Source: Zancudomyces culisetae HAW-14-8
Taxonomy: Eukaryota; Fungi; Kickxellomycota
Assembly (NCBI GenBank): GCA_052426225.1
Contig: JBNJNM010000023.1
Location: 1-64,000, forward strand
Direction of reading: 5' to 3'
DNA: 64,000 nt
In this document: positions 1-45,133 of the stretch, in pieces
Layout of the letters: every line of letters starts with the position of its first letter
How positions within the stretch are numbered: the stretch's first letter is position 1
Made by a program: the position numbers and the translations under genes
Notes under the pieces: model-generated
What the model was told of the DNA's origin: nothing
Seen by the model: the letters and a program-made list of their open reading frames with translations, nothing else
The model's database searches: none

Positions 1-1260
1 TCCTAACCCTAACCCTAACCCTAACCCTAACCCTAACCCTAACCCTAACCCTAACCCTAACCCTAACCCTAACCCTAACCCTAACCCTAACCCTAACCCT
101 AACCCTAACCCTAACCCTAACCCTAACCCTAACCCTAACCCTAACCCTAACCCTAACCCTAACCCTAACCCTAACCCTAACCCTAACCCTAACCCTAACC
201 CTAACCCTAACCCTAACCCTAACCCTAACCCTAACCCTAACCCTAACCCTAACCCTAACCCTAACCCTAACCCTAACCCTAACCCTAACCCTAACCCTAA
301 CCCTAACCCTAACCCTAACCCTAACCCTAACCCTAACCCTAACCCTAACCCTAACCCTAACCCTAACCCTAACCCTAACCCTAACCCTAACCCTAACCCT
401 AACCCTAACCCTAACCCTAACCCTAACCCTAACCCTAACCCTAACCCTAACCCTAACCCTAACCCTAACCCTAACCCTAACCCTAACCCTAACCCTAACC
501 CTAACCCTAACCCTAACCCTAACCCTAACCCTAACCCTAACCCTAACCCTAACCCTAACCCTAACCCTAACCCTAACCCTAACCCTAACCCTAACCCTAA
601 CCCTAACCCTAACCCTAACCCTAACCCTAACCCTAACCCTAACCCTAACCCTAACCCTAACCCTAACCCTAACCCTAACCCTAACCCTAACCCTAACCCT
701 AACCCTAACCCTAACCCTAACCCTAACCCTAACCCTAACCCTAACCCTAACCCTAACCCTAACCCTAACCCTAACCCTAACCCTAACCCTAACCCTAACC
801 CTAACCCTAACCCTAACCCTAACCCTAACCCTAACCCTAACCCTAACCCTAACCCTAACCCTAACCCTAACCCTAACCCTAACCCTAACCCTAACCCTAA
901 CCCTAACCCTAACCCTAACCCTAACCCTAACCCTAACCCTAACCCTAACCCTAACCCTAACCCTAACCCTAACCCTAACCCTAACCCTAACCCTAACCCT
1001 AACCCTAACCCTAACCCTAACCCTAACCCTAACCCTAACCCTAACCCTAACCCTAACCCTAACCCTAACCCTAACCCTAACCCTAACCCTAACCCTAACC
1101 CTAACCCTAACCCTAACCCTAACCCTAACCCTAACCCTAACCCTAACCCTAACCCTAACCCTAACCCTAACCCTAACCCTAACCCTAACCCTAACCCTAA
1201 CCCTAACCCTAACCCTAACCCTAACCCTAACCCTAACCCTAACCCTATCCCTAACCCTAA
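1..1260 (+). repeat. Telomeric tract (CCCTAA)n, about 210 hexamers (TTAGGG-type telomere, left chromosome end)
   Basis: Continuous CCCTAA array from base 1; first CCCTAT variant at 1243-1248. Confidence 0.99.
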
Positions 1261-1398
1261 CCCTATCCCTATCCCTATCCCTATCCCTATCCCTATCCCT
1301 ATCCCTAACCCTATCCCTATCCCTGTCCCTATCCCTATCCTGTTCCATATTCATATCCCATTCCCTTTTCCTATCTCTATCGCTAACCCTATCCCGAA
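1261..1398 (+). repeat. Degenerate telomere-variant repeats (CCCTAT, CCCTGT, then decaying hexamers)
   Basis: 7x CCCTAT at 1261-1302, then in-register hexamers cctgtt/ccatat/tcatat/cccatt/cccttt/tcctat/ctctat/cgctaa/ccctat/cccgaa. Confidence 0.9.
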
Positions 1399-1638
1399 AT
1401 CAATCGTATCTGCATGAAAACTAACATAATCGCTTCTAATGTCTGCAAAGTTATCAACCTGAATGAGATAATTTCTCAAAGAATCTGAACTTGATAATAT
1501 TAAGATAAGTCCTAACACGCTTAAATTCATTGCAGTTAAAAACAGTAACGCTCTTGGAACTCAAAAGCTAGCTAAAATCATTGAAGCTCACTGTTTTACG
1601 ATAATATATAAAGCCACCAATGAAAAAATCCAACTGAT

Positions 1639-1969
1639 TGTCATAAACTAATATTAAACAGTTTCAATTTAAATCAACAAACATTATCAAACATGATTTG
1701 GATGAATCAGAAATATGATTTTAAACATATTTAATATTGAAACTAGCACAAACACAACTTTACTTTAAATAGTTCATTAATTTTAACTACTTTCTATTTA
1801 TGCAACATAACAGTATAAAATATTAAATTTATATAATACAAACAAAAAGTTTTAATAGCATTCTTTATTCCTTCAGAAAAACTTATACACAACAAGTGTC
1901 AACAATAAATATATTTTATGAAGTACTTAATAATCACTAAATTACACCAAAATATATAAGTTCATGACA
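1639..1969 (+). repeat. 5' LTR of Ty3/gypsy element 1
   Basis: Direct repeat of 7255-7586; TG..CA ends. Confidence 0.95.
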
Positions 1970-2004
1970 GTTTGTCAGATCAATATATATTAACTACTAC
2001 TATC

Positions 2005-3356
2005 ATGTCAGAAAATAATTACGAAGATCTTAATGCACTAGTAACAATGACTGTAAGTCTTTTTAATGAATTACATAGGATATCTACTGTCACGACTTGA
2101 CAATGAGTACTATATGTATCATTATGACAATGATTTATTAAATAAAATCACAAGAGATGAATAGTATTTTATTGCTAAAGATTCCTAAAGCAATATATTT
2201 TTGTAATTATATAGTTTTACAATATACAAAAATAATTGTAAAACATAATAAAATCTACACTTAAGCTATAACTTAAAACTAAATAATATTATTTGTCAAC
2301 TCCACAGTTACATTTAATAGTATGGGGTAAAACCAAATTATAAAAAATTATTTATTCAAACTTATAAAATATAATATTGGAGTAAGAATTAAAGCGATGA
2401 TAAATTAAATAAATTTAACATTTGCTATTTTAAATAACATATTAAAAATAGCAATAATGTCATGAATGGATCATGACAGCAACCCAACTAGACGATCTTC
2501 AGCTCCGCACAAATATGTTAAGAAATAATCAAGCAAACGTGTTACCAGTGGCTAGTGAACCAAATGTAGCAGATCCTGAATACTTTAGTGGCAATAGAGA
2601 CCAACTAAGAAACTTTATAGCACAATTCCAACTAGTCATACAAGCTCAACCCTCAAGATTTTCAACAGAAACTCAGAAAGTCATTTTTGCTTCTACTTTC
2701 CTTCGTGGTCCTGCTATCTCGTGGTTACAACCGTGTCTAGTATCTAATGATCATGAACCAATTCTGGAAAATTTTGACATTTTCATAAACAAACTTCATC
2801 GTGTTTTCGGAAATCCACACCAATCTTCAACAGCTGAACGTCAACTCAGAAAACTTCGCCAGTTGGGATCCGCAGCCACCTATGCTACTGTATTTTGTCG
2901 TATTTCGACACTTATGTCCTGGCATGACGCAGCACTCATTAGCCAATTTTTTGAAGGTTTAAAGAAATAATTAAGAATTTATTAGCATGTTTTGATAGAC
3001 CAGACATATGTTCAGAAATTTTTGACCTCGCTATAATAATTGACTACAGACTATTTGAAAGATATCGTGAAATAATGTTACGCCCTCGCCCAATGGATAT
3101 TCTAAATTTGGATTACTCTACACCATCAAGATACAATTTAATAAACATAACACAGCCTCGGGTGCAACAAATGGAAATTGACGGAAATTCATCTCGTCGC
3201 CCACCACTCACTCAGACTGAAACACAACTCTACCGCGACCTTAATCTTTGTCTATACTGTGGTAATCCTGATCATGTCATTTCATCTTGTCCTCGTCGCC
3301 CGCAAATAAAGTTACCTAATACTATATCTGCAAGCATTATTAAGGAAAACAATTAA
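2005..3356 (+). pseudogene. gag pseudogene (Ty3/gypsy), interrupted by a solo LTR
   Basis: ATG 2005 MSENNYEDL..HRIST continues in frame as QLDDLQLR after removing 2088-2478. PEYFSG capsid-like motif; CX2CX4HX4C knuckle (CLYCGNPDHVISSC); premature stop at 2970. Confidence 0.85.
2088..2478. mobile_element. Probable solo LTR inserted in gag of element 1
   Basis: TGTCACGA...TCATGACA termini; degenerate 5-bp TSD TCTAC/GCAAC; its excision restores the gag frame. Confidence 0.7.
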
Positions 3357-3388
3357 GCTCAAGACAATTTTCGGACGTAGTCTTGAGC
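3343..3388 (+). promoter_or_regulatory. Putative -1 ribosomal frameshift signal (gag-pol) of element 1
   Basis: AGGAAAAC just before the gag stop, followed by hairpin GCTCAAGAC(3357-3365)..GTCTTGAGC(3380-3388). Confidence 0.5.
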
Positions 3389-3599
3389 GTATCTAATTAT
3401 ATTAAACCGTCCACTTCAATCAATAATCTTTACCCTTTAAATATTGCCGCTAATGTAACTATCGGAAGTTTATATCAAGCTGAATTAAATCTACTTTTAC
3501 AATATACAATAAAATAAACACTACGGAAATAACCAAACTAACACCAGTAATTAATGTAAAAGATACATTCTACTAATCCAACTATAACTCTGAAAATAA

Positions 3600-3760
3600 A
3601 CATGAAACCAAAACTGAAATCAATCCTGAACTTAATACTGAAATCAATCCTGAACTTAAACCTGAACTTAAACCTGAACTTAAACCTGAACTTAAACCTG
3701 AACTTTACTCATATCCTGAACTTAAGCCTGAACTCAAGCCTGAATCTATACCTGACTGAA
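3600..3760 (+). repeat. 12-bp minisatellite (AAACCTGAACTT; KPEL-like repeats) upstream of the protease
   Basis: Tandem aaacctgaactt units at 3658-3705 with degenerate flanking copies. Confidence 0.85.
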
Positions 3761-3786
3761 ACTTAAAAATTAATCCCACAATCAAT

Positions 3787-6700
3787 ATGAATCTTGACCT
3801 GGAACATTTAACTATGTCAACAAATAAAGTTAACTCTCACCTTATAGTTTCAGTAACCCTTAAGGTAAACAATAACCCGTTAAAAACCGTTGCCATAATT
3901 GATTCGGGCGCAACAAATCGCTTCATTGATTCTACTTTTGCCAATACTAATAACATTCCATTAGTATTAAAAAAATTATTTATTCCGCTACTAGTAATTC
4001 ACGCAAGATTAATTTCTTCAGGCTCCATAACACACAATACAATACCTCTTCAACTTAACACCTATATTCATCACGAAACTATATCCTTTGATGTAACCAA
4101 ACGTGGAAAATACCCTGTAATTATTGGAATAAACTGGCTGAGAACCCATAATCCACACATAGAGTGGAATTTAGATAAGTTGTATTTCATGTCTGAATAT
4201 TGCCAAAATAATTGTAGTATTCAACAAAACCAATGTTATACACTCACAATAACTTGCACATGAATTCCAGAATAATCAGAAATAACTCCTATACCATCGG
4301 AATATTCAGAATTAAAGATGTATTCGACGAAAAAGCAGCTAATAATATACCACCTCATCGTACATATGATCATAAAATTCCGTTAACACCAGGCTCACAA
4401 CCACCATTGGGACCAATATATTCACTATCTGATACAGAACTCGCAGCACTTCGTGAATATTTGAAAGAAAATTTAGAAAAGGTTTTATTCATATTTCATC
4501 ATCTCCAGCTGGCTCTCCTATACTTTTAGTATAAAGAAAGTTGGATATTTAAGATTATGCGTTGATTATGAGGATAAAATAACTTGACAATTAAAACAGG
4601 TATCCCTTACCTTTAATCGGAGAGTTACTCGACAGATACTGACAAGCGAAAATATTTTTTAAAATCGATTTAAGAGGCGCTAATAATTTAATATGAATAG
4701 CTAAGAGAGAAGAATGGAATACTGCATTTTGTACGAGTTACGGTCACTATAAATATAGAGTTATGCCATATGGACTCTGCAATGCTCCAGCATCGTTTCA
4801 ATATTTCATGAATGATGTATTATCTGACCGCTTATATAGATTTGCAGTAGTATATATATATTATATACTGGTTTATAGTACAATATACGAAGACCATATT
4901 AAGCATGTAAAAGATATATTAAGAAGACTCCAGAATAATTCACTTTATGCTAAACTGGAAAAAGGTCGATTTCACAAAACAAAAGTCGAATTCTTGGGAT
5001 ATATTGTTTCCGATAAAGGGGTAAGTATGGATATTCAAAGACAATAGCTGTAAGTACATGGCCTGCACCAACCTCAATTAATGAAATTCAAACGTTCCTT
5101 GGTTTTGCAAATTTCTATAGAAAATTTATAATGAATTTTTCAAAGATTGTGACACCTATAACAAAATTGTTACGAAAAAATGAAAAATGGAACTGGAGCA
5201 CTGAAGCACAAAACTCTTTCGATCAATTGAAAAAAGCATTTACAACTGCACCTATTTTAAAATATTTTGATCCGAATAAATCAATTACTATCGAAACTGA
5301 TGCATCAGACATCGCAATTCAAGGAGTTATATCACAACGCGACGATAATAACAATTTACATCCTATAGCATATTATTCCAGAAAGTTACAACCTGCTGAA
5401 ATCAACTACAAAATTTACAATAAAGAAAAGTTAGCCATAATTGAGGCTTTTAAAGAATGGAGATCATACCTTGAAGGAGCATTACATCAAATTACGGTTT
5501 TAACAGACCATATAAATCTAGAATATTTTACTACCACTAAAACTTTGAATAGGCGTCAAGCACGATGGGCAGAATTATTAGGAAATTAAAATTTCATTAT
5601 TAATACGCAACTGGTTCATCTAACGGGAAACCCAATGCTTTGTCCTGACGCCCGGATCATTTTCATAAGGAGGGTTATGACGCTCTACGTAATAAGTAAG
5701 GTTTGCTATAGCCAGAACAGTTGATAATTGCAGCAGTAGAGCCAATGGTTGCTAATAATTTTGATAAAACTATATTAAATAGTAGCTACAAAAAAGATAT
5801 TAAGTTAATTCCATTAATTCTAAATTGAAACATATTAACAATTCATCTAACTCTGAATATCCAAACCTAAAGGATTATAAATACGACAATGAAATACTTA
5901 CTTTTAAAGGTAAAACATACATTCCAGATAACATTGAAATCAAACTACTACTACTCAACCAATTTCACGATTCGCTTATTGCTGGACACTTCGGACATTC
6001 TAAAACCTTTGAACTGATTTCAAGATACTATTATTGGCCATAAATGAGAAAAATGATTAAAAATTATATTAACTCATGCGATCAATGTTGCAGATGTAAA
6101 CCGATAAGACTCAAACCATATGGTCAACTACAACCTTTACAGATTCCAGATAAACCGTGGGAATCAATTTCTATGGATTTTATTGTTGGGTTACCATTGT
6201 CACAAACTTACGATTCAGTATTGGTTATTGTAGATAGACTAACAAAAATGGCGCATTTTATTCCAACAAATAACAATATCAACGCACAACAAACAGCAAA
6301 ACTATTTATCAATAACATATTTAAACTTCACGGACTGCCAAAAGATATCGTCTCTGATAGAGGTTCTATCTTCACTTATAAATTTTGGAATACTATTACC
6401 AAAGTATTAAATATGCAATTAAATATGTCAACAGCATACCATCCACAAACGGATGGTCAAACGGAACGAGTAAACCAAGTTTTAGAACAGTATATCAGAA
6501 TTTATTGTAACAACAACCAAACAAACTGGCATGATTTATTAGCACTCGCAGAATTTGCATATAATAACTCAAAACACTCAACTACAAAATTTTCACCATT
6601 CTACGCTAATACTGGATATCATCCTTCAATATTTCGATCAAATATTTTGACTTCATCCAGTAACTCGCCCATAATCACAGATTCAACTCAGAAAAAGTCA

Positions 6701-7242
6701 CAAGTTACAAGGAACTTATAAAAAATATTAAAAATGCAAATGAAAGATATGCTAAAGCATATAATAAAAACAGACAAACAGAACCCGAGTTTAATATAGA
6801 TTCAAAAGTGTGGTTAAATAGAAAATATATTAAAACTAACAGACCAAATAACAAACTAGATTATACTAAATTAGGTCCATTCACAATAGTTATAAAATTA
6901 AGCAAAGTAGCATACGAACTTCAACTTCCTACGACTATGAAAGTACATCCTGTCTTTCACGTTTCCCTTCTATAACCAGTAACTAACAACACTATTGAAG
7001 GCCGAATTCAGGAAGCTCCATTACCGGTACTAGTTGATAGAATATCAGAATACGAAGTCGAGCAAATATTAGACAGTTGTATTAAATATAATAAACTACA
7101 ATATCTAGTGGACTGGAAAGGGTACGACGCAAGCGAAAGAACTTGGGAACCAGCCGAACATCTAACAAATATAAAAGAACTTATGGAAAAGTACCATAAT
7201 GAAAACCCGAATAAACCAATCTCGCTCAGAGATCGACACTAA
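3787..7242 (+). pseudogene. pol pseudogene (PR-RT-RNaseH-integrase-chromodomain)
   Basis: Fragmented ORFs contain IDSGAT, MPYGLCNAPASFQ, a lost YxDD (YIYY), ETDASD, SMDFI..SDRGS..PQTDGQTERVN, and chromodomain YEVEQILD..YLVDWKGY..TWEP (~7050-7155). Confidence 0.92.
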
Positions 7243-7254
7243 GAGCGTGAATAC

Positions 7255-7586
7255 TGTCATAAACTAATATTAAACAGTTTCAATTTAAATCAACAAAAAA
7301 TATCAAAAATGATTTGGATGAATCAGAAATATGATTTTAAACATGTTTAATATTGAAACTAGCACAAAACACAATTTTACTTTTATAGTTCATTAATTTT
7401 AACTACTATCTATTTATGCAACATTTTAGTATTTAATATTAAATTTATAGATTACAAACAAAAAGTTCAAATAGCATTCTATATTCCTTCAAAAATACTT
7501 TTCTGACAACAAGTGTCAACAATAAATAAAATTATAGTAGTACTTAATAATCACCAAATTACACCAAAATATACAAGTTCATGACA
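7255..7586 (+). repeat. 3' LTR of Ty3/gypsy element 1
   Basis: Direct repeat of 1639-1969; preceded by a decayed purine tract and followed by TSD CTGAT. Confidence 0.95.
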
Positions 7587-9195
7587 CTGATAAACAAAAA
7601 AAGTAGAGAACTCTATACAAACTTCAATTTAGATTTAAAATCATTGCTTCTATTACTTCACTTGCTGATACAATTACAAAATTTGAAGCTGACCTCCTCA
7701 ATATCTTTTATATTTAACTTCAAATTTTTAAGATTAATTTTAACTCAAGAAAACTAAAAAAATCATATAATTGCTGAAGCTAAGAAGGCTATTAAGCGAC
7801 AAGAACTAGAACAAAACTCGAAGACCGTAGATACACAAGCTAGTTTAAATGGACAAAGATATGTAAATTATGGCAACAAATTGCGTCGAAACCATCAACC
7901 AATATAACCAAAATATCTAAAATATACCTCAGCAAGAAAAAACACCAAAGGATAGCTAATAAACTACAAATCCAACAAAAGACAATTATTAAACAACAAT
8001 ATAAGTATAATCAACAACATAAATCTTTCAAAAGCAAACAAGGTCCAAAGAAGTAACCACAACATAATATTCAAAAAAAAATATAACCCTGTTTTCACTT
8101 CAGACATCAATAACATCAACAATTTCTATGTAACTTTATCAAAATACAACAAAGTCAACTAAAAAACATCTAGATACAGTTACTTTTTTTCATAGCATGA
8201 CTTCCAAATCAGAAAGTAAACTACTTATAATAAACAATTGCTTTAAACACATACCTTAATTACTCAACAATGAAATACATAACATTGACCTTACTTTTTT
8301 AATACCACACATCTTTTATCACATGATTATATACTCCAACAACGTTGATGACAAATTATTAATAAATTATACAGAAATTCTTGAGAAAAAATTATTTTAT
8401 ACAACCACTCCTAAACTCAATGAGAAATCTAAATCTTTATACCTAACGTTATCAATGATATCAACCTTGACGGAATTATTAACATAATAAATTTAATAAT
8501 CACATAGGCCCTATAATCTTGGATACACAAGATTATCACAAACAAGGATTCAAAATATTATACAACATTAACAATATTGTACAATTCGTAATAACTCAGA
8601 TGACATCAATGATCAAGTATTTAATCATACATATAATAATCTAATTAACTACTCACTCCAAATTATTATTCAAAATCAAATAAGCCTACTTCATAAAGAC
8701 AATAATATCCAATTACCGAATTTCGACATAAAATTAATAATCCATAAAACGCCAATTGAGTTTCGACCAATTACATCGCTACAAATTGGCTAACAACGAA
8801 GTTATCTAAAATAATAGCAATATATTAATTGAATAAAATTACCCAGTAATCTAAGAAATTCTTAGAATTGATCAAACAACTTGAAAACAAAGTTATTCCC
8901 AATAACTACTTCATAGGATAACTCGATTTGTAACTTTAATTCAATAGTTCGAATCAAAACTTTGACAGTACTATTCTTAAATTGACCAAATCTCAATAAA
9001 TAACTGATGCCACAAATACCATTTGTGAATCCAACTATCTTATGTATCATAAAAATGTATTTAAATATATTATTGTTATCACAATGGGCACCAATGCAGA
9101 ATAAATGAACTATACTATACCTTCAAATATTGATAATATTTTAAAATATTTTGCCTTCATTAATACTGATATATTAACGATAAATTCTAGAAAAC

Positions 9196-9908
9196 TGTTG
9201 TAAACAATGAGCTGCTTATAACTTTGGACCGTGGATTAGTTATGCTTGATTAATATTTATTAGAAGAAGTATGTATTTAGAGTAATATATTAATAGATGA
9301 GTTAATAAATTAATTTTTATTCCGATGTATACCAACGGAATTTCGAAGGGTTTAATAATTTTTATTAGAGAATTTTACTATGAAGAAAAACTTAATGACA
9401 ATATATTTTAGCTATAAAAATATGATAATGTATAATCTAATTAGATTAGGTATCTACTTATCGTAAACTTATAATTTCATTTTTTGATTTTAACATGTAT
9501 TTAGATTATCGATTATAACATTATATTTGTATATCAATTTACATTGATTTTGTATTAAACTTTAACATTGATTTTGTATATCAATTTTAGCATAGATTTT
9601 ACTTAATGATTTTGGCATAGATTTTATTTATCAATTTAATCATTGATTTTAGATATCCAATTCTCTATGGATTATGTCTATCCAGTTTTACCATGGATTA
9701 TTATAAATTTGATAATTGTAAAATTTCTTGAATTTATTTAGTAAATTTTCTATAAATTAATTCTGATATTTGATGGTGTATTTTGCTAACATGATTTCAA
9801 TGTCGGATAACATTTTTGAAAGCCGGATATGAAATAAAATAATAGGATAAATTTATCATAAGCCAAAATGTTACTATAATTATTACCGGGAATTGACCAT
9901 TCCTAACT
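9196..9908. mobile_element. Solo LTR, family A copy 1 (inserted just after the PLE RT catalytic motif)
   Basis: Homologous along its length to 11406-12233; termini TGTTG..TAACT (decayed); TSD degenerate (AAAAC/GTAAC). Confidence 0.75.
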
Positions 9909-9914
9909 GTAACC

Positions 9915-10054
9915 TGTCACAGAACGAGATTTATTGAATAAACAAGTTGTAATTCTTAGAGAATTACAACGAAGCATAAACGAAATGATTAAATAGAAGA
10001 TAAAATATTAAGATTAATTATGGGTAATAAGAAGTAATATTATTGGCTATAACA
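9915..10054. mobile_element. Short (140 bp) solo-LTR-like insertion
   Basis: TGTCAC..ATAACA termini flanked by a perfect 5-bp TSD TAACC (9910-9914, 10055-10059); the PLE RT frame resumes after it. Confidence 0.7.
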
Positions 10055-11405
10055 TAACCCACAAAGACAATTTATCCAAACTTATACACACCGTCAACAA
10101 CAGCATCCCTGGAATAAATATGACCCTCGCTATGATTTCATCCAATACTGTAGACTTTCTTGATAAAACTGTTTACGTAAATACTGAAATAAATATCAGT
10201 TTCAAAACGTATCAAAAACCTCTTAATCTTTACGGATAAATACCATTTTTTTCGTAACACAGCATTTTTACCAAAAAAGCAGTTATATCTGGTGAATTAA
10301 ACTGATTCTAAGAGAATTCACAGATTATAATGACTTTGTTGGATTTGATAATTATTCAAAGAACGACTACTAGCACGATGATAAACAAAAATTCATAAAT
10401 GACATACTTATTAAAAACACATACGATGTTAGAAAATTATTGCTAAAAACGACCAATAAACCTTTAAAAACATTGTTCCATTAGTAATATTCTACAACAA
10501 ACATTCATACTACCAAATATTACAAATTTCATACTTGAACTCAACATATCTAAAACTGCTCTAAGTTAAAATTTAAGATATATTATTGCTTGAAAAAATC
10601 ACCGAATCTTGGTGATTACCTACTAAAATTTGGGCTAAAAAAAGCTCAAGCCGAATATTTCAAGGATAATTATAGGGCTGATTCAAACCCAGCCCCAATC
10701 CTATCACTATAGATGCTCCAACACAGAAAGTCGGTATTCAAGGTAATTTTCCGATGAATCGGAAGATCTTTAAATCAATCTCACAAACTCTGTATAATAA
10801 TTTTGGAAATTCAAATTACCAACCTAATCACAAATTTACTTTGTATTAAGTTTGATCAACCAAATTTTTATTTTGTTTTTAAAAAATTATATCATTATAT
10901 ACCAACTATGAAAAATTATGCTGATTATACCAAATACCTTAATTAGTGAAAAGAATCATTATCGTTTAGAGAATTAATATCTATTAATATACTTTTCATT
11001 CAATACACAACGATATCAAACTGTTGACTAATTATCTTTATTATGTAACAATTATCTAATAATTGTTTAATACATATAACGCTTTAACATATACTATAAA
11101 TTAAATAAAAATTAACTTTAATAGCATATACGAATTATTATTATATAATTACAAAGAAGTACATTATATGATTATTTAACATTTTTATAACAATAAAAAT
11201 AAAACCATTATAAATAGATACAATACATAACATTTCTATACCAAAAAAGTCGCAAAAATCATGAACATAATATAAATATGCACATATTTAAATATTATAT
11301 TCAATTATATTTACAGGTATCCGTTATGATAAAAAAAAATAATCTACAATCATAATATATTTTACTAAAAAATGTTACACTCAACAAATTAATTAACTCT
11401 ACTTT

Positions 11406-12233
11406 TGTTATAAACAATGAGCTGCTTATAACTTGGCGTAGAGATTTCTTATGCTTGATTAATATTTATTTAGGAAGAAGTAAGTATTTAGAAAAATATA
11501 ATATTTGATGTGTTGATCAATATATATTTTTCTCTCATGTATCCCAACGGAATTTCGAAGGGTTTATATAATTTTTCATCAGAGAATTTTACTGTGAAGA
11601 AAAACTTAAAGTCAATAAATATTAGCTATAAAATTTGTCTATGTAAAAGTGAACTAGTTTAAGGTATCTACTTATCGTGAAATTTGTAATTTTCATTTGT
11701 TGATTTTAACATAGATATGGTTTATCAATTTTAACATTGATTTAGTATATCAATTTTAACAATGATTTTGTATATTGATTTTATCATAGTTTTTGTTTAT
11801 CGATTTTAGCATTGATTTTGTTTATCGATTTTATCATGGTTTTTGTTTATCGATTTTATCATGGTTTTTGTTTATCGATTTTAGCGTTGATTTTGTTTAT
11901 CGATTTTATCATGGTATTTGTTTATCTATTTTATCATGGATTTTGTATATTCCATTATATTATGGTTTTGGATTATCCAATTTTTTCATGGATTTGGTTT
12001 ATCCAATTTTATCAAGGATTATTGTTAAATTAAATTATTGAAAATTTCTTGATTTTGCTTAGTAAATTTTCCCAATAATAATATCAGAAAATTCATGGTG
12101 AATTTTGCAAACATGATTCCAATGTCGGAATGGCATATTAGAAAACCGGAAATGAAATAATAAAATAGGTTAGATTTTTAGTAGGCCAAAATGTAACTAA
12201 AAATTATGTTCCAGGAATTGGCCATTCCTAACA
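11406..12233. mobile_element. Solo LTR, family A copy 2
   Basis: TGTTA..TAACA termini; perfect TSD ACTTT (11401-11405, 12234-12238); internal ~22-bp tandem repeats. Confidence 0.88.
11720..12020. repeat. ~22-bp tandem repeats (TTTGTTTATCGATTTTATCATGG-like) inside solo LTR A2
   Basis: Visible tandem units; fewer copies in A1 (~9510-9700). Confidence 0.85.
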
Positions 12234-12412
12234 ACTTTAGTAAACTTGATTGATTATAATATATTTTTCAAATCATATAATCAGTAATAATAATGCATAA
12301 CACAACTGAGGAGGAACAATAAATTGTTTCAGAAACGATAATGTCAAACCTTATTTCAATTATGCCTTCATAGTTTTATCTTTCTACAACATAGGACTTT
12401 ACAGTCAATATA

Positions 12413-14018
12413 CAGTGACTCAAAAAATTGTTCAAATGTTTTTGATGTTCATTAAAAATTTATTATATCTCGCGAATACTATATCGTATCACTATAAATT
12501 TTACAATCATTATACATCCATATACCGTGTATTACCTATCAAAATTTTAGTATACTTGAACCAGCCAATCAACTGTAGTTAACTTTTTGTAAAAATATTT
12601 TATTTGAACAAATTTTTTGCTAATACTAAAAAAATATATAAACGTAATTAAACTAGTATTTAGTATATCCACCCCTAGCTTTCAATACAGCATTAATTCT
12701 TGATGGCTGCTACTGATTAGCGACATACACTCGTCACGTGATATCTTATTCCACTCGTCTTGTACGCGGTCCCAATGTTCGTTCATCCATTTTGGTGCAT
12801 TTTCGTGATTTGACAGCCGTCTTTTCAAATTGACCCATAGATGTTCAATTGGATTTAGGTCAGGTGACTGCGCTGGCCATTCAAGCATCTGAATTGAGTT
12901 AGTTTGCAACCATTCTTTAGTAATTTTCGCGGTGTGTTTTGGATCGTTATGATGCTGAAAAATCGTACTTTCCCTGTCTAAGTCGTACCACTCCATTGAT
13001 TTTACCTGTTCGTCTTCAGAATATCACAGTACATTTCTGCATTAAGTCCGCAATCAATTTTAGTAAGATATCCTGGGCCTTCTGAAGTCATGCATCCCCA
13101 TATCATGATTGAACCTCCATCATGTTTTATATTTTTTTTAACATGGTTCGGTTTTAACTGGCTCCCTTGTTTTATCCAGCACCACATGCGCCCATCTGAC
13201 CCAAATCTGTTAATTTTAGTCTTGTCAGACCATATCACACGTTACCAGTCTACTACAGTCCAATGCTGATATTTTTAGCAAATGCAAGTCGTTGTTTAAT
13301 ATGGCCAAATTTTAGCATAGGTTATTTGACCTTAGGTTTTGCACTTAAACCATTTTTATTCAAGCTATTCCGCACTGTTTGATGAACCACAGATACGAGA
13401 CCATTATCCTTGAGAAATTTTGTTGTTTCAGTCGCTGTATCAAATTGTCCAGACGTAATTTTCCGAATTATTAATCGCTCATTTGCTTTTGTCAATTTAT
13501 TTGGGCTGCCAGGTGATAAATTTTTTATTGATGGACGATACTTTTTTTTATGTTAGATATTGTCCCTTTACTAATAGATAATTTAGATGCAATTTGGATA
13601 TATGAGTATCCATTATCCAGCAGATTTATAACACTCCAAAATTTTTCATTATTGAGTTTTTTGATTGAATTTAAATTGATCAAAAATTTATATTTTTATA
13701 GTATGATGATTGTGTAATAATTGTAAGTTATATCTAGTAACTTATAAAATTTTTAAATGATATCTTACATAATGAAAAAGATATCATCAAAATTTTTAAA
13801 TTTTATTTAAAACCAAATAATTGTTCAAATAAAATATTATTACAAAAAGTATAACTACAGTTGATTGGCTGGTTCAAGTATTCTAAAATTTTGATAGGTA
13901 ATTCATGGTATATTAATGTAGAATATTTGAAAATTCATAGTGATACGAATAGTATTCGTGAAATATAATAATTTAATAATGCACATCAAAATCATTTGAA
14001 CAATTTTTTGAGTCACTG
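12413..14018 (-). mobile_element. Tc1/mariner DNA transposon (DD34E), defective
   Basis: ~205-bp TIRs starting CAGTGACTCAAAAAATTGTTCAAAT; TA TSD at 12411-12412 and 14019-14020. Confidence 0.95.
12653..13670 (-). pseudogene. Tc1-type transposase pseudogene
   Basis: WSDKT, GGSIMIWGCM, FQHHNDPKH (second catalytic D changed to H), SPDLNPIEHLW with D34E spacing, C-terminal GGYTKY; frameshifts. Confidence 0.9.
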
Positions 14019-14380
14019 TATTTTTAATATGTTTAGTTGAATGAAATGATAACTTATTAAAATTATGCGAACTTCCAGATACAATTATGTGTGTGTACCA
14101 ATCTTTATTATAAATCGTAAATTCTTTCCTAGATACTATTTTATCGATTAATCCATTACCTTAAAATTTGGTAAAAAATTAAATCGATAAAACGAGTGTT
14201 TAAATTTAGAAACTTTATACGTAATGATGTGTGTAATGACAGACATCACTGTATAATTTTTATAAAATATGTATAATAACTAAATATAATAAATTTAAAC
14301 CATACATAAACTGATGTCCCCTGTTTCCTGATGAATCTTTACCATCGTTGAGCTAGGTAAGGGTGGGAATTGGGTGGGAC

Positions 14381-14473
14381 ATAATTGTATCTGGATGTTC
14401 GCATAATAATAATAAGTTTTCATTTCATTCAACTAAACATGTTATTATGCTTCACTTATCTAGATACAATTAT
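14381..14473. other. DIRS internal complementary region (ICR)
   Basis: 14381-14440 is the reverse complement of 14029-14088; 14441-14473 is the reverse complement of ~23754-23786. Confidence 0.88.
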
Positions 14474-14858
14474 GTAGCTTCAGAGTTCAAGATAAATTGA
14501 GTTAAATTTTCACGAGGTCTACGATAAAATTGATAATAAGTATTAAATATACCTTTACTTGCCCAAAATTCTTGTGCAATAACATCGTCGTATGTCGCAC
14601 CTAGCTTTGTAGCTCTAGTAGATCCTAATGCTCGAGCTTTTGGTAACTTTGCGCTTTCTGGCAACTGCAAGAGTGACATCAATGAATTAATATGTTTACT
14701 GATTCGTTGTGCCCCAATGTGTTTGTCGTTATACTTTAAGTTGCGGATAAGGTAGTGCAATTGTACTCCATCGAGGATCGGATGGTTTGCAACACTCGGA
14801 AAAGTTGCAATGCGTTTTTTAATTGCTCTGTATGTTACTACAGGACATAATTTATAGT
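14470..14858 (-). pseudogene. DIRS tyrosine recombinase, C-terminal half
   Basis: In frame with the N-half after removing 14859-20082: ..HAHSDY|KLCPVVTY..PKARALGST..FW..FNTYY. Confidence 0.9.
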
Positions 14859-36398: not shown

Positions 36399-36815
36399 AT
36401 GGTAAAGTCAACACTCGCACTCCTCACAGCCGCAGTTGCCACAGTATCAGTAAATGCTGCATCCGCTCCAAGACCAAGAGCAAATGTTGGTCCTATGCAA
36501 CCACCAATGGAACAGGTTCAGGACTTTGGAAGATATGCTCCACCATCTCGCCCTGCCTTTAATAACCGCTTTGCCGCTCCAGCCTACCGCAAGCGTGCTG
36601 ACGAGGAGGAGGAAGTTGCACCAGCTGACGACGATTCTGCCCAAACTGTTGATCCTTCAGCAGAAGGTGGTGATGCAGGAAATGGAACCGATGACCGTTG
36701 GTGGTACGGATACTACGGCTACCCATACTATGGCGGATACTACGGATATCCATCGTATGGTTACGGTTACGGTTACGGTTACAGCTACCCATACTACGGT
36801 GGATACTACTACTAA
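36399..36815 (+). CDS. Secreted protein with Tyr/Gly-rich C-terminal peptide
   Basis: Signal peptide, Pro-rich segment, RKR site, acidic linker, then RWWYGYYGYPYYGGYYGYPSYGYGYGYGYSYPYYGGYYY; GC-rich codon usage against AT-rich flanks. Confidence 0.88.
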   Translation: MVKSTLALLTAAVATVSVNAASAPRPRANVGPMQPPMEQVQDFGRYAPPSRPAFNNRFAAPAYRKRADEEEEVAPADDDSAQTVDPSAEGGDAGNGTDDRWWYGYYGYPYYGGYYGYPSYGYGYGYGYSYPYYGGYYY

Positions 36816-42393: not shown

Positions 42394-42801
42394 TTATGCT
42401 AGGAACCAAATTATAGAGTTGGCGGGTCCTCCAACCTTGTCAGCTTCCACATCATATGGATAAAGCCAGGTTTTTCTACGTTCAGTTACACACTTTCCAC
42501 TGCAGTCATTACTGTGGCACAGTGCAACCCATCCGCGTCCTGGTTGTCCGCTATCAAACCGGAGTGATTGGGCACTTGGTAATGAGACACATCTATTTGG
42601 TCTTATATTTATGGTATCACCTGGACTTTGAAGACTCTTCTCTTGAAACACTTCAACCTTCATTCTAGCACTGCGATTTCGACAAGAACAAAGTCTGTTT
42701 GGTCCAATTGGGTATCTATTGTGTTGGCGTAAAGACAAGTCACCCATGCTGTTTGCAATGGTTAGTCCCAAAGCTGCTGTTCCGATTATAATAGTTTTCA
42801 T
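42394..42801 (-). CDS. Small secreted protein, family S copy 2
   Basis: Signal peptide; VEVF..IRPNRCVSL..ALCHSNDCSGKC..WLYP..SIIW; TATATAAA upstream. Confidence 0.85.
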   Translation of the reverse strand: MKTIIIGTAALGLTIANSMGDLSLRQHNRYPIGPNRLCSCRNRSARMKVEVFQEKSLQSPGDTINIRPNRCVSLPSAQSLRFDSGQPGRGWVALCHSNDCSGKCVTERRKTWLYPYDVEADKVGGPANSIIWFLA

Positions 42802-45133
42802 TTTGTTAGTTAATAATTCAATTTTTACTCTTCTTAATTTTTAAAATACTCTCCAAACCAGCTGGATTTATATACTTTTTTGTTTTGAACAAGTTTAGAG
42901 TAAAATCAAAGTATAATGTGTAGAGACGAGTGTTGTAAAAGTAAAGTTAAAAGCTATTTTGTTAATTTTTTCAAAACAATAAATTATGATCTACTGCGTT
43001 TTAAAACATCCATGCAACTTTTGGCTAATGTTGAGAAATTACTAGTTTAAAAAGGTAGTAGTGTACATGGTGCATAACTCTAAGTGTGTAAGTCGCTATA
43101 CGAATATCATATGACTAGATTATCAACTCTAATATATTTATTGTACTTTATGATATACTAACCTGTTAGGTTTTAAGAGCTATCATATTGAAAAAATAGT
43201 AACAAATCGTTTATGACATGATGTTAGCACTTAATGGAGATCAAACTCTGAGAATTGATTAACAGATTGCTGTGCAGCTCAATTTATGAAAAAAACATTG
43301 CTGTACATATTTGAACTATTTGAGGGGGTTTCGAAAAAAAAGTAATAAACCTCTTTAGCTAAAGTAGCACACACTCCAGAATAAAAAATTCAATACAAAA
43401 AACACTAGAACAATAGTTGAGTAAAGTTGCATTATAAGCTACCATTCATTCATTTTTAGTTTTTTTGATCAATCAAATTTATAGGCTTATTGTAGCTAAG
43501 TAAAGTAGGCTAGACGTAAATTATACATATTCATGATATCCATTCAAAATAAATGTAGTCAGGCCATAGTTGTAGCATAAAATAGAACAGTTGTATATAT
43601 AATGGTAGGATGAGAAAAATTAGAGTAATGCTATGAAAAATAGTGAAAATAATGTCATGGAACTAATGTACATTCAATCATCAATCATCAATTCTCTTTT
43701 TTCGGTTTGAGTATTTGAATATTTGATTTGCGCTCAATAACACACTTGAAACTTTAATACAAATATGCGAATGTTTTTATGCCAAGTCAATAATTCTCAG
43801 TTATGCTTATTGTAGTATATAGCAACAAAGCTTTTTGTAAATATTTGAATTAGACCATACTAGAATTGTAAACCGCTATACTTCTTTTTCAAGTAAATCG
43901 AAATTAAAAACCTTAACTAAATATACTAAAGTACACGCATATCAGTAATATTCAATAAACCTGTTAAGAAAAGTACACTCTAAATTGATGAATATATTAA
44001 GCAGGAATTTGGCATTTCACAAAGCCTGAATCAAATATGCTCCAATTATAATTCAAATGCATGTACAGCATATTCCAGAATTGAATGACGGTTGACGAAT
44101 AACACAACATTAAAAACACCAACAGAATATGGTATAGATATTCCACGCATTAATTGGGGGAAGGGATAGGTATCGACCAAAACAGTTTCAGTTCACAAAA
44201 TTTCAAAAATTATAGCCTTTAGGGTTATATTCCTTTCTAGCAGCTAAATTAGAGTGAAATAAATTTTATACGGAGCATTAAATAAAAGATGATGTCTATT
44301 TTATAATAGAGTTATTTATTTCATTTTTTAGCCTGTTACATGAACCTGAGTTTATATTAAATGAGAATAGTAATATCTATATACAAGTTAATATCTATAA
44401 ATTTATACTCCAAAAAAAGAAAATCGCTTAGATTAGTATTATTATACTATACGCAACGAGATCGATACGTTAGTTAATGACATTTCGAATGCTCTTTCTA
44501 TTTGTTGCTAAAATAAAAATCATGACTCTTTGTTCTTAGTTGGTCACATTTTGAATACATACATTTGTACTGTTACGATATTTGATATATACTAATATTG
44601 AAAGTTCTTTTTATGGTTTATTCCATTTAATAACTTTTTCTTGAATCTTTGATCTGAATAATTCCCTCATTATTCGCGATCGGAAATTAATTACATCTTT
44701 TTGATGTTAACATACTAATTAAAATGAATTTGATTATTTGATATAATTTAAATTCCTCAATAATTTTTGATTTCCAAGTATTAGATTCTGTAGATCTTGT
44801 AACCTTTAGCACACGACAAGTTCTGTTGTCCTACAAGGTCCTTTCTGTAGATAAGTGTAAAGGATTAAAATATAGAGCTTTTTTAATGTTTTTTTTACGT
44901 CCATTTATTGCTGATTAGCACCAGTACCGTTAAAATATATAGTTAATTTACCTAAAAACTACACATATTCGGTTCAAACCTGTTGCTGTATACTGATTAA
45001 CTTTCAAACTTTAATTTAAAGATCTTTTATTATGTATTAGTAGGGTGACTATCATTCTAACATAATATTAAATAAATAGTATGTGCAAATATCTATGCAA
45101 TTAATAAATGGTAATGGTTTGATGTTATGATTA

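Follow-up and report, generated by a model that had tools for sequence, protein, structure and literature searches.

At one end of a contig of the fungus Zancudomyces culisetae HAW-14-8, a reverse transcriptase (RT) riddled with stops lies directly below the telomere. The stretch of DNA analysed, here called the window, comprises 64,000 nucleotides (contig JBNJNM010000023.1, positions 1 to 64,000). The question raised by this locus is whether a Penelope-like element (PLE) without an endonuclease (EN) once extended this chromosome end, as stated in the original prediction, or whether the relic came to lie there in another way. The relic is very probably the dead remnant of a single EN-less PLE of a Harpellales lineage, which spread together with its telomere junction as subtelomeric DNA and the original arrival of which would have been a single terminal addition.

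The relic has its 5' end distal and is capped by C-strand telomere repeats, as predicted, with the array and the junction occupying positions 1 to 1398. Below the junction, the coding region is interrupted by insertions.

1 to 1337 (run from 2), forward strand: telomere array (CCCTAA)n that forms the end of the contig and chromosome (TRF: period 6, 222 copies, 99% matches)
1244 to 1398, forward strand: telomere-variant zone, CCCTAT and then decayed hexamers, ending at the junction ...TATCCCG followed by AAATCAATCG
1399 to 1638, forward strand: 5' stub of the PLE open reading frame (ORF), N-terminal region, separated from the rest by a Ty3 element
1639 to 7586, forward strand: decayed Ty3-type long terminal repeat (LTR) retrotransposon within the PLE ORF (its LTRs occupy 1639-1969 and 7255-7586)
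7587 to 8480, forward strand: PLE N-terminal region continued, Lys/Gln/Asn-rich, with up to 132-149 open codons in other copies
8483 to 9195, forward strand: DKN-type motif NNHIGPIILDTQDY (~8495-8536) and RT motifs 1-5, read across stops and frameshifts
9196 to 9913, strand not given: MITE-like insertion with 25-bp tandem repeats, common to all copies examined
9914 to 10054, strand not given: 141-bp insert, window-specific, with a 97% identical copy elsewhere in the subtelomere at the start of contig C15
10055 to 10712, forward strand: RT motifs 6-7, thumb and C-terminal tail, ending at the stop codon TAG 10710-10712 with no GIY-YIG

The RT was pieced together from positions 1399-1638, 7592-9195 and 10055-10712, across 12 stops and 8 frameshifts. 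The coding span, of ~830 codons, reaches from near the N terminus to the C-terminal tail and is nearly full length. All the motifs named in the original prediction are found in sense frames. RT motifs 1-5 are represented by IHKTPIEFRPI, a SLDL-type motif, ITMGTNA and YINDKF, and positions 10055-10712 contain DFLD, YQKPLNLY..IPFFS.HS..K..ISGEL and LLAR, followed in the tail by PLV..YN and KKSPNL (10593-10610).

A Pfam search of ten stop-free pieces and a word-based protein search with the relic returned no match, as would be expected if the motifs were chance matches in AT-rich junk, or debris of a different class of RT, for instance Ty3 or LINE. The probability of such an origin is negligible. 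A two-piece profile of 101 positions covering RT1-RT2 retrieved, from 1.84 billion proteins, 25 with E <= 1e-3 (best, 7e-9), the best matches being PVU85307, PVU89948 and PVU87003 of Smittium simulii. In tblastn, those 25 proteins align to positions 8778-10300, beyond the query region, and in a single frame over the excision joint between 9195 and 10055. Moreover, a frameshift-aware alignment to the EN-less protein P0012 scored 349, versus 59 ± 9 for shuffled protein (z ~34 over ~460 residues), and the relic is collinear with residues 149-609 of P0012. A PLE RT profile made from foreign sequences only matches positions 10063-10320 at an E value of 6e-16; over the whole genome, it matched only the subtelomeric relic copies and the host telomerase RT (TERT), and not the Ty3 and DIRS RTs of the genome. 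The TERT match (C8:1866330-1866623) adjoins a Telomerase_RBD match, showing that the host has its own TERT gene. Profile, tblastn, frameshift-aware alignment and reciprocal PLE profile together refute the reading as chance or another RT class. The PLE-type motif set (DKN/DKG, RT1-7 and thumb), homologous to that of PLE RTs, places the relic in this group, and the indirect profile test suggests that its RT is nearer to that of telomerase than to those of LTR or LINE elements.

The 5' stub shows homology to the S. simulii PLE protein P0002 in its N-terminal part, where no Pfam domain was found. The alignment (score of 72 versus a null of 37 ± 3.6) spans the point of Ty3 excision, and therefore the PLE coding region continues across the Ty3 site up to the telomere-variant repeats, as had been proposed. 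Counted on the S. simulii homologue, the stub begins at about codon 58, with ~57 codons missing.

At the 3' side, the ORF stops 33 codons past KKSPNL, near the ~30 codons originally estimated, and Pfam found no GIY-YIG downstream; elsewhere in the genome, GIY-YIG matches are confined to C18 and to an interior part of C14. The pattern KKxPxL...K.GL...Q.E[FY][IL] of the tail matches the end of P0012, and neither end of the relic ORF bears a GIY-YIG endonuclease. The family of P0012 takes in RTs with a C-terminal GIY-YIG (P0112 and P0117) as well as PLE-like RTs from tick and frog; by name, the searches gave only proteins of S. simulii, one tick and one frog. In the RT tree, which sets proteins with GIY-YIG against proteins without it, the relic and Smittium form a clade (SH-aLRT 99) nested within a clade of 63 RTs (98) that holds no GIY-YIG-bearing protein. 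The nearest relatives, all EN-less, are decayed PLEs of the gut fungus S. simulii (Harpellales). No report of this fungal lineage was found in the literature, nor any open paper linking PLEs to Zoopagomycota. The relic thus appears to belong to a Harpellales-specific PLE lineage, previously unreported as far as found, in keeping with the suggestion of an unreported lineage in an early-diverging fungus.

The relic is present at 19 contig ends, with 22 DNA matches that all lie at most 26 kb from a contig end. Their orientation is uniform, plus at contig starts and minus at contig ends, and neither genome searches nor the PLE profile found an interstitial copy, so that homologues in the host genome are not scattered but subtelomeric with one polarity (22/22). 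This distribution, the lack of an endonuclease in the family, and the numerous ends at which Coprina elements are found in Agaricus, Tuber and Ascochyta (PMC13159263) are what would be expected if each end had been lengthened on its own by an active EN-minus PLE that targets telomeres, resembling Athena or Coprina, in separate retrotranspositions followed by decay. That scenario is nevertheless very improbable in view of what the copies have in common. Intact copies were looked for and none was found, every copy containing 8-17 stops and 8-15 frameshifts. Two in-frame stop sites are common to 11/11 copies and six more to 8-10 of the 11. The junction ...TATCCCG followed by AAATCAATCG is also present at the C21 and C15 ends, identical at all three, and the decayed hexamers immediately distal of it are near-identical between C21 and the window. 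No telomere tracts were found between the copies at two-copy ends. Signs of independent terminal insertion, such as different truncation points or telomere-separated arrays, were not encountered; the examined copies share junction, insertions and stops.

The insertions give the same picture. The LTRs of the Ty3 element are ~90% identical to each other, and its target duplication, CTGAT, is found at 1634-1638 and 7587-7591. This insertion, as predicted, is real, and other ends have it at the same site, flanked by the same duplicated target. Direct observation of the 3' Ty3 junction extends to at least 10 copies; the distal 7.5 kb was compared for three ends, and elsewhere sharing of the 5' Ty3 junction is deduced from the distance to the contig end. 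The second proposed insertion, 9196-10054, proved to be a composite of the MITE-like element and the 141-bp insert, of which only the latter is specific to the window; a relative of the MITE-like element lies at 11406-12233, where it is window-specific. Copy alignments continue without a break over the MITE and over the Ty3 junctions on either side. The tree of the LTRs, which is star-shaped, gives no order of events. Furthermore, homology among the other ends extends at least 3.9 kb proximal of the element, and in the window it includes two stretches below the ORF.

10713 to 11405, forward strand: part of the subtelomeric block shared among ends, on the proximal side of the ORF; either the 3' untranslated region of the element or older subtelomere
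12234 to 12412, forward strand: shared block continued after the window-specific MITE (11406-12233), containing a hammerhead-like string at 12306-12345

The common Ty3 site, MITE, telomere junction and stops, together with homology that runs kilobases past the element, show that the relic reached the window end by DNA-level copying of the subtelomere. At least 16 kb of subtelomeric block was copied as DNA, and the element was already broken, carrying the Ty3 and MITE insertions, before it spread. The copies are 83-98.5% identical to one another, with a mosaic of identities when one half of the element is set against the other, indicating that ectopic recombination, gene conversion or break-induced replication has taken place repeatedly among ends. 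Since one dead element spread as DNA, its uniform polarity at ~19 ends is one inherited event and not repeated evidence of telomere targeting. The claim that a terminal retroelement once extended this end consequently fails as written: at least two stops, the Ty3, the MITE and the junction are common to other ends. The relic is today without retrotransposition activity and serves only as subtelomeric repeat DNA.

Yeast Y' elements are an example of subtelomeric repeat families spread by recombination. Like them, the relic block is a multi-kilobase, telomere-adjoining unit in one orientation at most ends, with mosaic copies of varying age that imply exchange among ends. In contrast to Y'-type families, its core is a wrecked PLE with nested transposons, and the element part studied has no intact gene.

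The telomere-capped, 5'-truncated distal position of the relic likewise records one ancestral event only, as the ends have the junction in common. The original copy may have arrived once by the known route of EN-minus PLEs (PMC8557442 and PMC13159263): an exposed G-rich telomere overhang would prime reverse transcription of the element RNA, the cDNA would become the new chromosome end, and telomerase would then cap its 5'-truncated end. The broken element, with Ty3, MITE, junction and at least 4-5 kb of proximal sequence, subsequently spread as a DNA block, which now occupies at least 19 contig ends. That one terminal addition took place long ago is plausible on indirect grounds; this concerns at most one ancestral event, and the orientation therefore counts as n = 1. 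A possible trace of such an event lies at the end of the ORF.

10685 to 10709, forward strand: short C-strand telomere-like tract, matching at 17/24 positions in the window and 18/24 in other copies

The probability of such a tract by chance in 4.8 kb is ~0.02 for 17/24 and 0.0025 for 18/24, and it could be a relic of terminal-addition biology. However, the 24-nt tract lies within the reading frame, where it translates as SNPAPILSL, and one S. simulii copy has a matching tract in the same place, with shared 3' sequence continuing for at least 600 bp beyond; the tract may therefore be coding or internal rather than an old telomere. In the PLE contigs of S. simulii, telomere-like tracts number six on the C strand, where 0.35 would be expected, and zero on the G strand. 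Units there have a conserved 3' terminus, ...TTCTTAAATACC, that passes straight into TAACCCTA..., so that unit ends abut C-strand telomere tracts in one polarity.

Because a single ancestral event is recorded, polarity has little weight against an ordinary interstitial insertion, either of an EN-bearing PLE that later lost its endonuclease or of an EN-less element that inserted by another route. The distal arm would then have been lost, the telomere would have healed inside the element, and the polarity would be a 50:50 accident. Break healing would give a 5' truncation exactly at the telomere, as found. Some more distant EN-less relatives (the P0089 cluster) occur in the interior of contigs up to 1.2 Mb, and the lack of GIY-YIG in itself is therefore no proof of telomere dependence in the wider group. 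The absence of a detected hammerhead also fits an interstitial ancestor. Apart from Naiads and most Chlamys, every PLE clade has the hammerhead motif in flanking or pLTR sequence (PMC8557442). Rfam models detected none at E <= 10 in positions 7000-14500 of the window and, at E <= 1, none in six further copies of the relic or in four S. simulii loci, in searches that minimal PLE hammerheads may escape and with a decayed relic; of the hammerhead-like string at 12306-12345, only the versions in the window and at the C12 end combine a good helix II with a GUC. Against this origin, the C-terminal tail coincides with the natural end of EN-less relatives, leaving no 3' endonuclease deletion to invoke, and the 5' truncation costs only ~57 codons. 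The telomere-like tract at the ORF end and the S. simulii sister lineage, with its tract excess and unit ends abutting telomere tracts in the same polarity, also speak against it. An interstitial ancestor is thus unlikely, and the single terminal addition is preferred. Whether the relic and the S. simulii copies together represent an undescribed Harpellales EN-minus PLE lineage that practised true terminal addition is a more tentative matter; this may be so, with the balance somewhat on the other side.

Among known elements, the relic can be set beside Coprina, the EN-minus PLEs of fungi that occur as well in a clubmoss, a diatom and a shrimp (PMC13159263 and PMC8557442). Both have a PLE RT with DKN motif, RT1-7 and thumb, no GIY-YIG and a fungal host, and both lie at the chromosome end with the 5' side distal under telomere repeats, at many ends per genome (Agaricus, Tuber and Ascochyta lentis for Coprina). 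In A. lentis, 12/13 Coprina elements are near-identical, transcribed and bounded by telomere repeats on both sides (PMC13159263), whereas the relic copies are all dead and derive from one broken copy spread as DNA. The relic host is moreover a zoopagomycete (a Harpellales relative) and not a dikaryon, and the likeness to Coprina is by description, not by named sequences. Athena and the Terminons of bdelloid rotifers are likewise telomere-associated, EN-less, 5' distal and capped, and Athena has reverse-complement telomere stretches near its 3' end (PMC8557442, which refers to Gladyshev and Arkhipova 2007 and to Arkhipova et al. 2017). Unlike the relic, in which no hammerhead is detectable, Athena is rotifer-specific and has additional ORFs and hammerhead motifs beside the telomere stretches. 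The EN-bearing PLEs (Penelope/Poseidon, Neptune and Nematis) have a homologous RT, with P0112 and P0117 (RT followed by GIY-YIG) coming from the same family search, but they carry a C-terminal GIY-YIG and insert genome-wide, whereas the relic has no GIY-YIG and its genome no interstitial copy.

The relic adds a zoopagomycete lineage to the EN-minus PLEs. No other retroelements are related so closely to telomerase, and chromosome ends that bear them are on record from rotifers, dikaryan fungi, a diatom and a clubmoss. It also reveals a fate of a dead EN-minus PLE, namely, to become the core of a subtelomeric repeat carried by recombination to nearly all ends. The same element in the same orientation at every telomere does not amount to telomere-targeted retrotransposition unless the insertions are proven independent. 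If terminal addition in Harpellales is true, the association of PLEs with telomeres would extend to early-diverging terrestrial fungi, and a natural series would lead from the terminal arrays of Smittium to a fossil absorbed into the recombining subtelomere of the Z. culisetae genome.

The chromosome end opens on a telomere array, followed by the relic, which is interrupted by two insertions. Its outer part is arranged as follows:

2-1337, terminal telomere array (CCCTAA)n, followed by CCCTAT variants that give way to decayed hexamers as far as ∼1398
1639-7586, Ty3-type LTR element, with LTRs at 1639-1969 and 7255-7586 that are about 90% identical

The Ty3-type element is flanked on either side by a CTGAT target duplication. 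When it is excised together with the insertion at 9196-10054, a single sense-strand reading runs from 1399 to the TAG at 10710-10712, and all of the Penelope-like element (PLE) reverse transcriptase (RT) motifs quoted in the original prediction are present in it. Read-throughs of the relic carry an X at each stop or frameshift and represent single natural copies, not consensus or ancestral sequences. The stub of 240 bp that separates the telomere from the Ty3-type element aligns to residues ∼58 to 145 of P0002, a PLE protein of Smittium simulii (score of 72 versus 37 ± 3.6). This alignment carries on over the Ty3 excision point, in agreement with the predicted continuation of the coding region toward the telomere repeats, and indicates that the relic is close to full length, with ∼830 codons. 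A tree of the LTRs, built to date the Ty3 insertion relative to copying, was an unresolved star.

Pfam searches with ten stop-free pieces of the relic retrieved nothing relevant, a word-based protein search with an alignment of its C terminus gave no match, and the same type of search with P0002 retrieved only one further S. simulii protein. A 101-position profile of the RT1-RT2 region, made from two overlapping natural pieces (a two-row tile), retrieved 25 proteins at an E value of ≤1e-3 (best, 7e-9) from 1.84 billion representative proteins. The top two and a third further down are from S. simulii, and the others are metagenomic RVT_1 proteins of 500 to 970 amino acids. In tblastn, these proteins match the window from 8778 to about 10300, far beyond the region of the query, and keep one frame over the 9195|10055 joint. 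Frameshift-aware alignment to the window covers residues 149 to 609 of P0012, a relative without a GIY-YIG endonuclease (EN-less), with a score of 349 versus 59 ± 9 for the shuffled protein; in this alignment, the window copy is broken by 12 in-frame stops and 8 frameshifts. The P0012 family includes tick and frog RTs as well as P0112 and P0117, in which the RT is followed by a C-terminal GIY-YIG domain, the canonical PLE architecture. Together, these profile, tblastn, alignment, and family comparisons allow the PLE assignment of the relic to be regarded as secure. A profile of 14 foreign members of this family, searched across the host genome, matched only the relic copies and the telomerase RT. 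The gene for the latter lies on the minus strand at G000:C8:1866330-1867975 (Telomerase_RBD match, E value of 1.4e-19), and its adjoining RT segment was found by the PLE-family profile at an E value of 1.2e-7.

No GIY-YIG domain is detectable after the KKSPNL motif of the relic, as had been predicted, and the only GIY-YIG matches in the host genome are on contigs C18 and C14 (interior). The final residues of the relic follow the pattern KKxPxL...K.GL...Q.E[FY][IL], and the EN-less P0012 closes with the identical pattern about 20 residues ahead of its stop. There is no N-terminal endonuclease either, and P0002 is without any Pfam domain. In a 101-row tree, which contrasts proteins with and without a GIY-YIG domain and includes three relic copies with an X at each break, these copies and three S. 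simulii sequences form one group (SH-aLRT of 99). This group sits inside a clade of 63 RTs (support of 98), and the GIY-YIG-bearing proteins all fall outside, which places the relic RT among EN-less RTs, as judged against a small sample of elements with the endonuclease.

In the host genome (27.1 Mb, 25 contigs), DNA searches revealed 22 matches to the relic, with 84 to 92% identity to the window. Each lies at most 26 kb from a contig end; those at contig starts are on the plus strand and those at contig ends on the minus strand. Together they occupy 19 ends of 11 contigs. The subtelomeric position and single polarity anticipated for homologues are present, but the copies are not independent insertions. 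In each copy examined, alignments continue unbroken over the MITE-like insertion (9196-9913) and the 3′ junction of the Ty3-type element; at the two other ends compared at their tips, they do so over its 5′ junction and the telomere junction as well. Two in-frame stops are common to all 11 copies analyzed, and six others are found in 8 to 10 of them. Homology among the other ends continues proximally for at least 3.9 kb past the point where that of the window stops. The copies are 83 to 98.5% identical, and a copy has different nearest partners in the first and second halves of the element, a sign of repeated exchange among chromosome ends. The common junctions, insertions, stops, proximal homology, and mosaic identities show that one already broken element, with its Ty3 and MITE insertions, spread with the telomere junction in a subtelomeric block that is at least 16 kb long.

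Three ends (C7 end, C9 start, and C21 end) each carry two partial relic copies, 0.4 to 14 kb apart. No telomere tract separates the pair at C21, the sole paired end examined. The pairs reflect local duplication or rearrangement and not a stacking of terminal additions.

The MITE-like element, which has an internal 25-bp tandem array, occurs twice in the window, at 9196-9913 and 11406-12233. The latter copy is specific to this end, with a joint of about 4 bp of overlap, which dates activity of the family to after the spread of the block. An inverted copy of the proximal segment that follows the block (42781-44740, minus strand relative to the block, 89% identity) lies about 30 kb further in; at other ends, this segment immediately follows the block, on the proximal side of the equivalent of 12412. 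The subtelomere of this chromosome end has undergone rearrangement as well as invasion by Tc1, DIRS, and Ty3 elements.

Comparison of 7587-9195 and 10055-11405 of the window with 13 other copies showed that A↔T transversions dominate the differences. The ratio of transversions to transitions among these subtelomeric copies is about 2:1, and the per-site frequencies of A>T and T>A match that of C>T. RIP was rejected as the cause of decay because the differences are mainly A↔T transversions and not C>T transitions; such a spectrum is not RIP-like and is unusual for neutral decay.

The original prediction held that a terminal retroelement once extended this end. The copies instead share a broken element by the spread of DNA, and it is for the ancestral copy that we infer a terminal addition. 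In favor of this, the lineage of the relic is EN-less, and its 5′ end is distal and capped. A telomere-like tract lies exactly at the end of the open reading frame (ORF), at 10685-10709, matching at 17 of 24 positions in the window and 18 of 24 in other copies (simulation P values of ∼0.02 and ∼0.0025, respectively). With the terminal arrays and a TTACGG-type microsatellite (36752-36789) set aside, it is the only such tract in the ∼168 kb examined. The PLE contigs of S. simulii contain six C-strand telomere-like tracts in element polarity (0.35 expected), of which one is a coding coincidence; the G strand has none. Three S. simulii units end in ...TTCTTAAATACC; TAACCCTA-type repeats adjoin two of these ends directly and come about 40 bp after the third. 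Against a terminal addition, there is just one event, and the ORF-end tract lies inside the reading frame; in S. simulii, shared 3′ sequence extends for at least 600 bp beyond it. Moreover, no locus searched with Rfam yielded a hammerhead, and more distant EN-less relatives sit inside large contigs. A hammerhead-like core at 12306-12345 was rejected because the copies do not conserve it. When the S. simulii UTR modules were compared with the block by sensitive blastn, only noise emerged, apart from a 23-bp tract at the ORF end.

In S. simulii, the PLE units of ∼3.5 kb are arranged head to tail (contigs MBFR01000287 and MBFR01000573) and share a conserved terminus, ...TGATACTGTAAATAAAGTTCTTAAATACC, followed by short C-strand telomere repeats. 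The stretches concerned on these two S. simulii contigs are as follows:

L036 1380-1610, 4170-4400, and 7010-7240
L042 680-900 and 6470-6710

After one joint, at L036 7080-7230, there is a GC-rich, hairpin-forming duplicated segment. A large environmental clade consists of two-ORF, EN-less PLE-like elements of ∼3.0 to 3.6 kb (L038, a 3,352-bp contig of JGI metagenome 3300044700, and L039 to L041, ENA long-read contigs), in which ORF1 has no Pfam match. Terminal redundancy in one of these contigs indicates that it is circular or tandem. Close relatives, the cluster of the RT protein P0089, lie internally on contigs as long as 1.2 Mb.

A general model of PLEs without the endonuclease at telomeres has been described (PMC8557442). 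Coprina is found at almost every chromosome end in Agaricus and Tuber and, with telomere repeats on both sides, at 13 ends in an isolate of Ascochyta lentis (PMC13159263). The relic thus belongs to a kind already known at fungal ends, and the element is dead. In the open literature, no paper was found that links PLEs with Zoopagomycota, Kickxellomycotina, or Harpellales, so that, in agreement with the predicted unreported lineage in an early-diverging fungus, both the host lineage and the clade formed by the relic and Smittium appear to be new.
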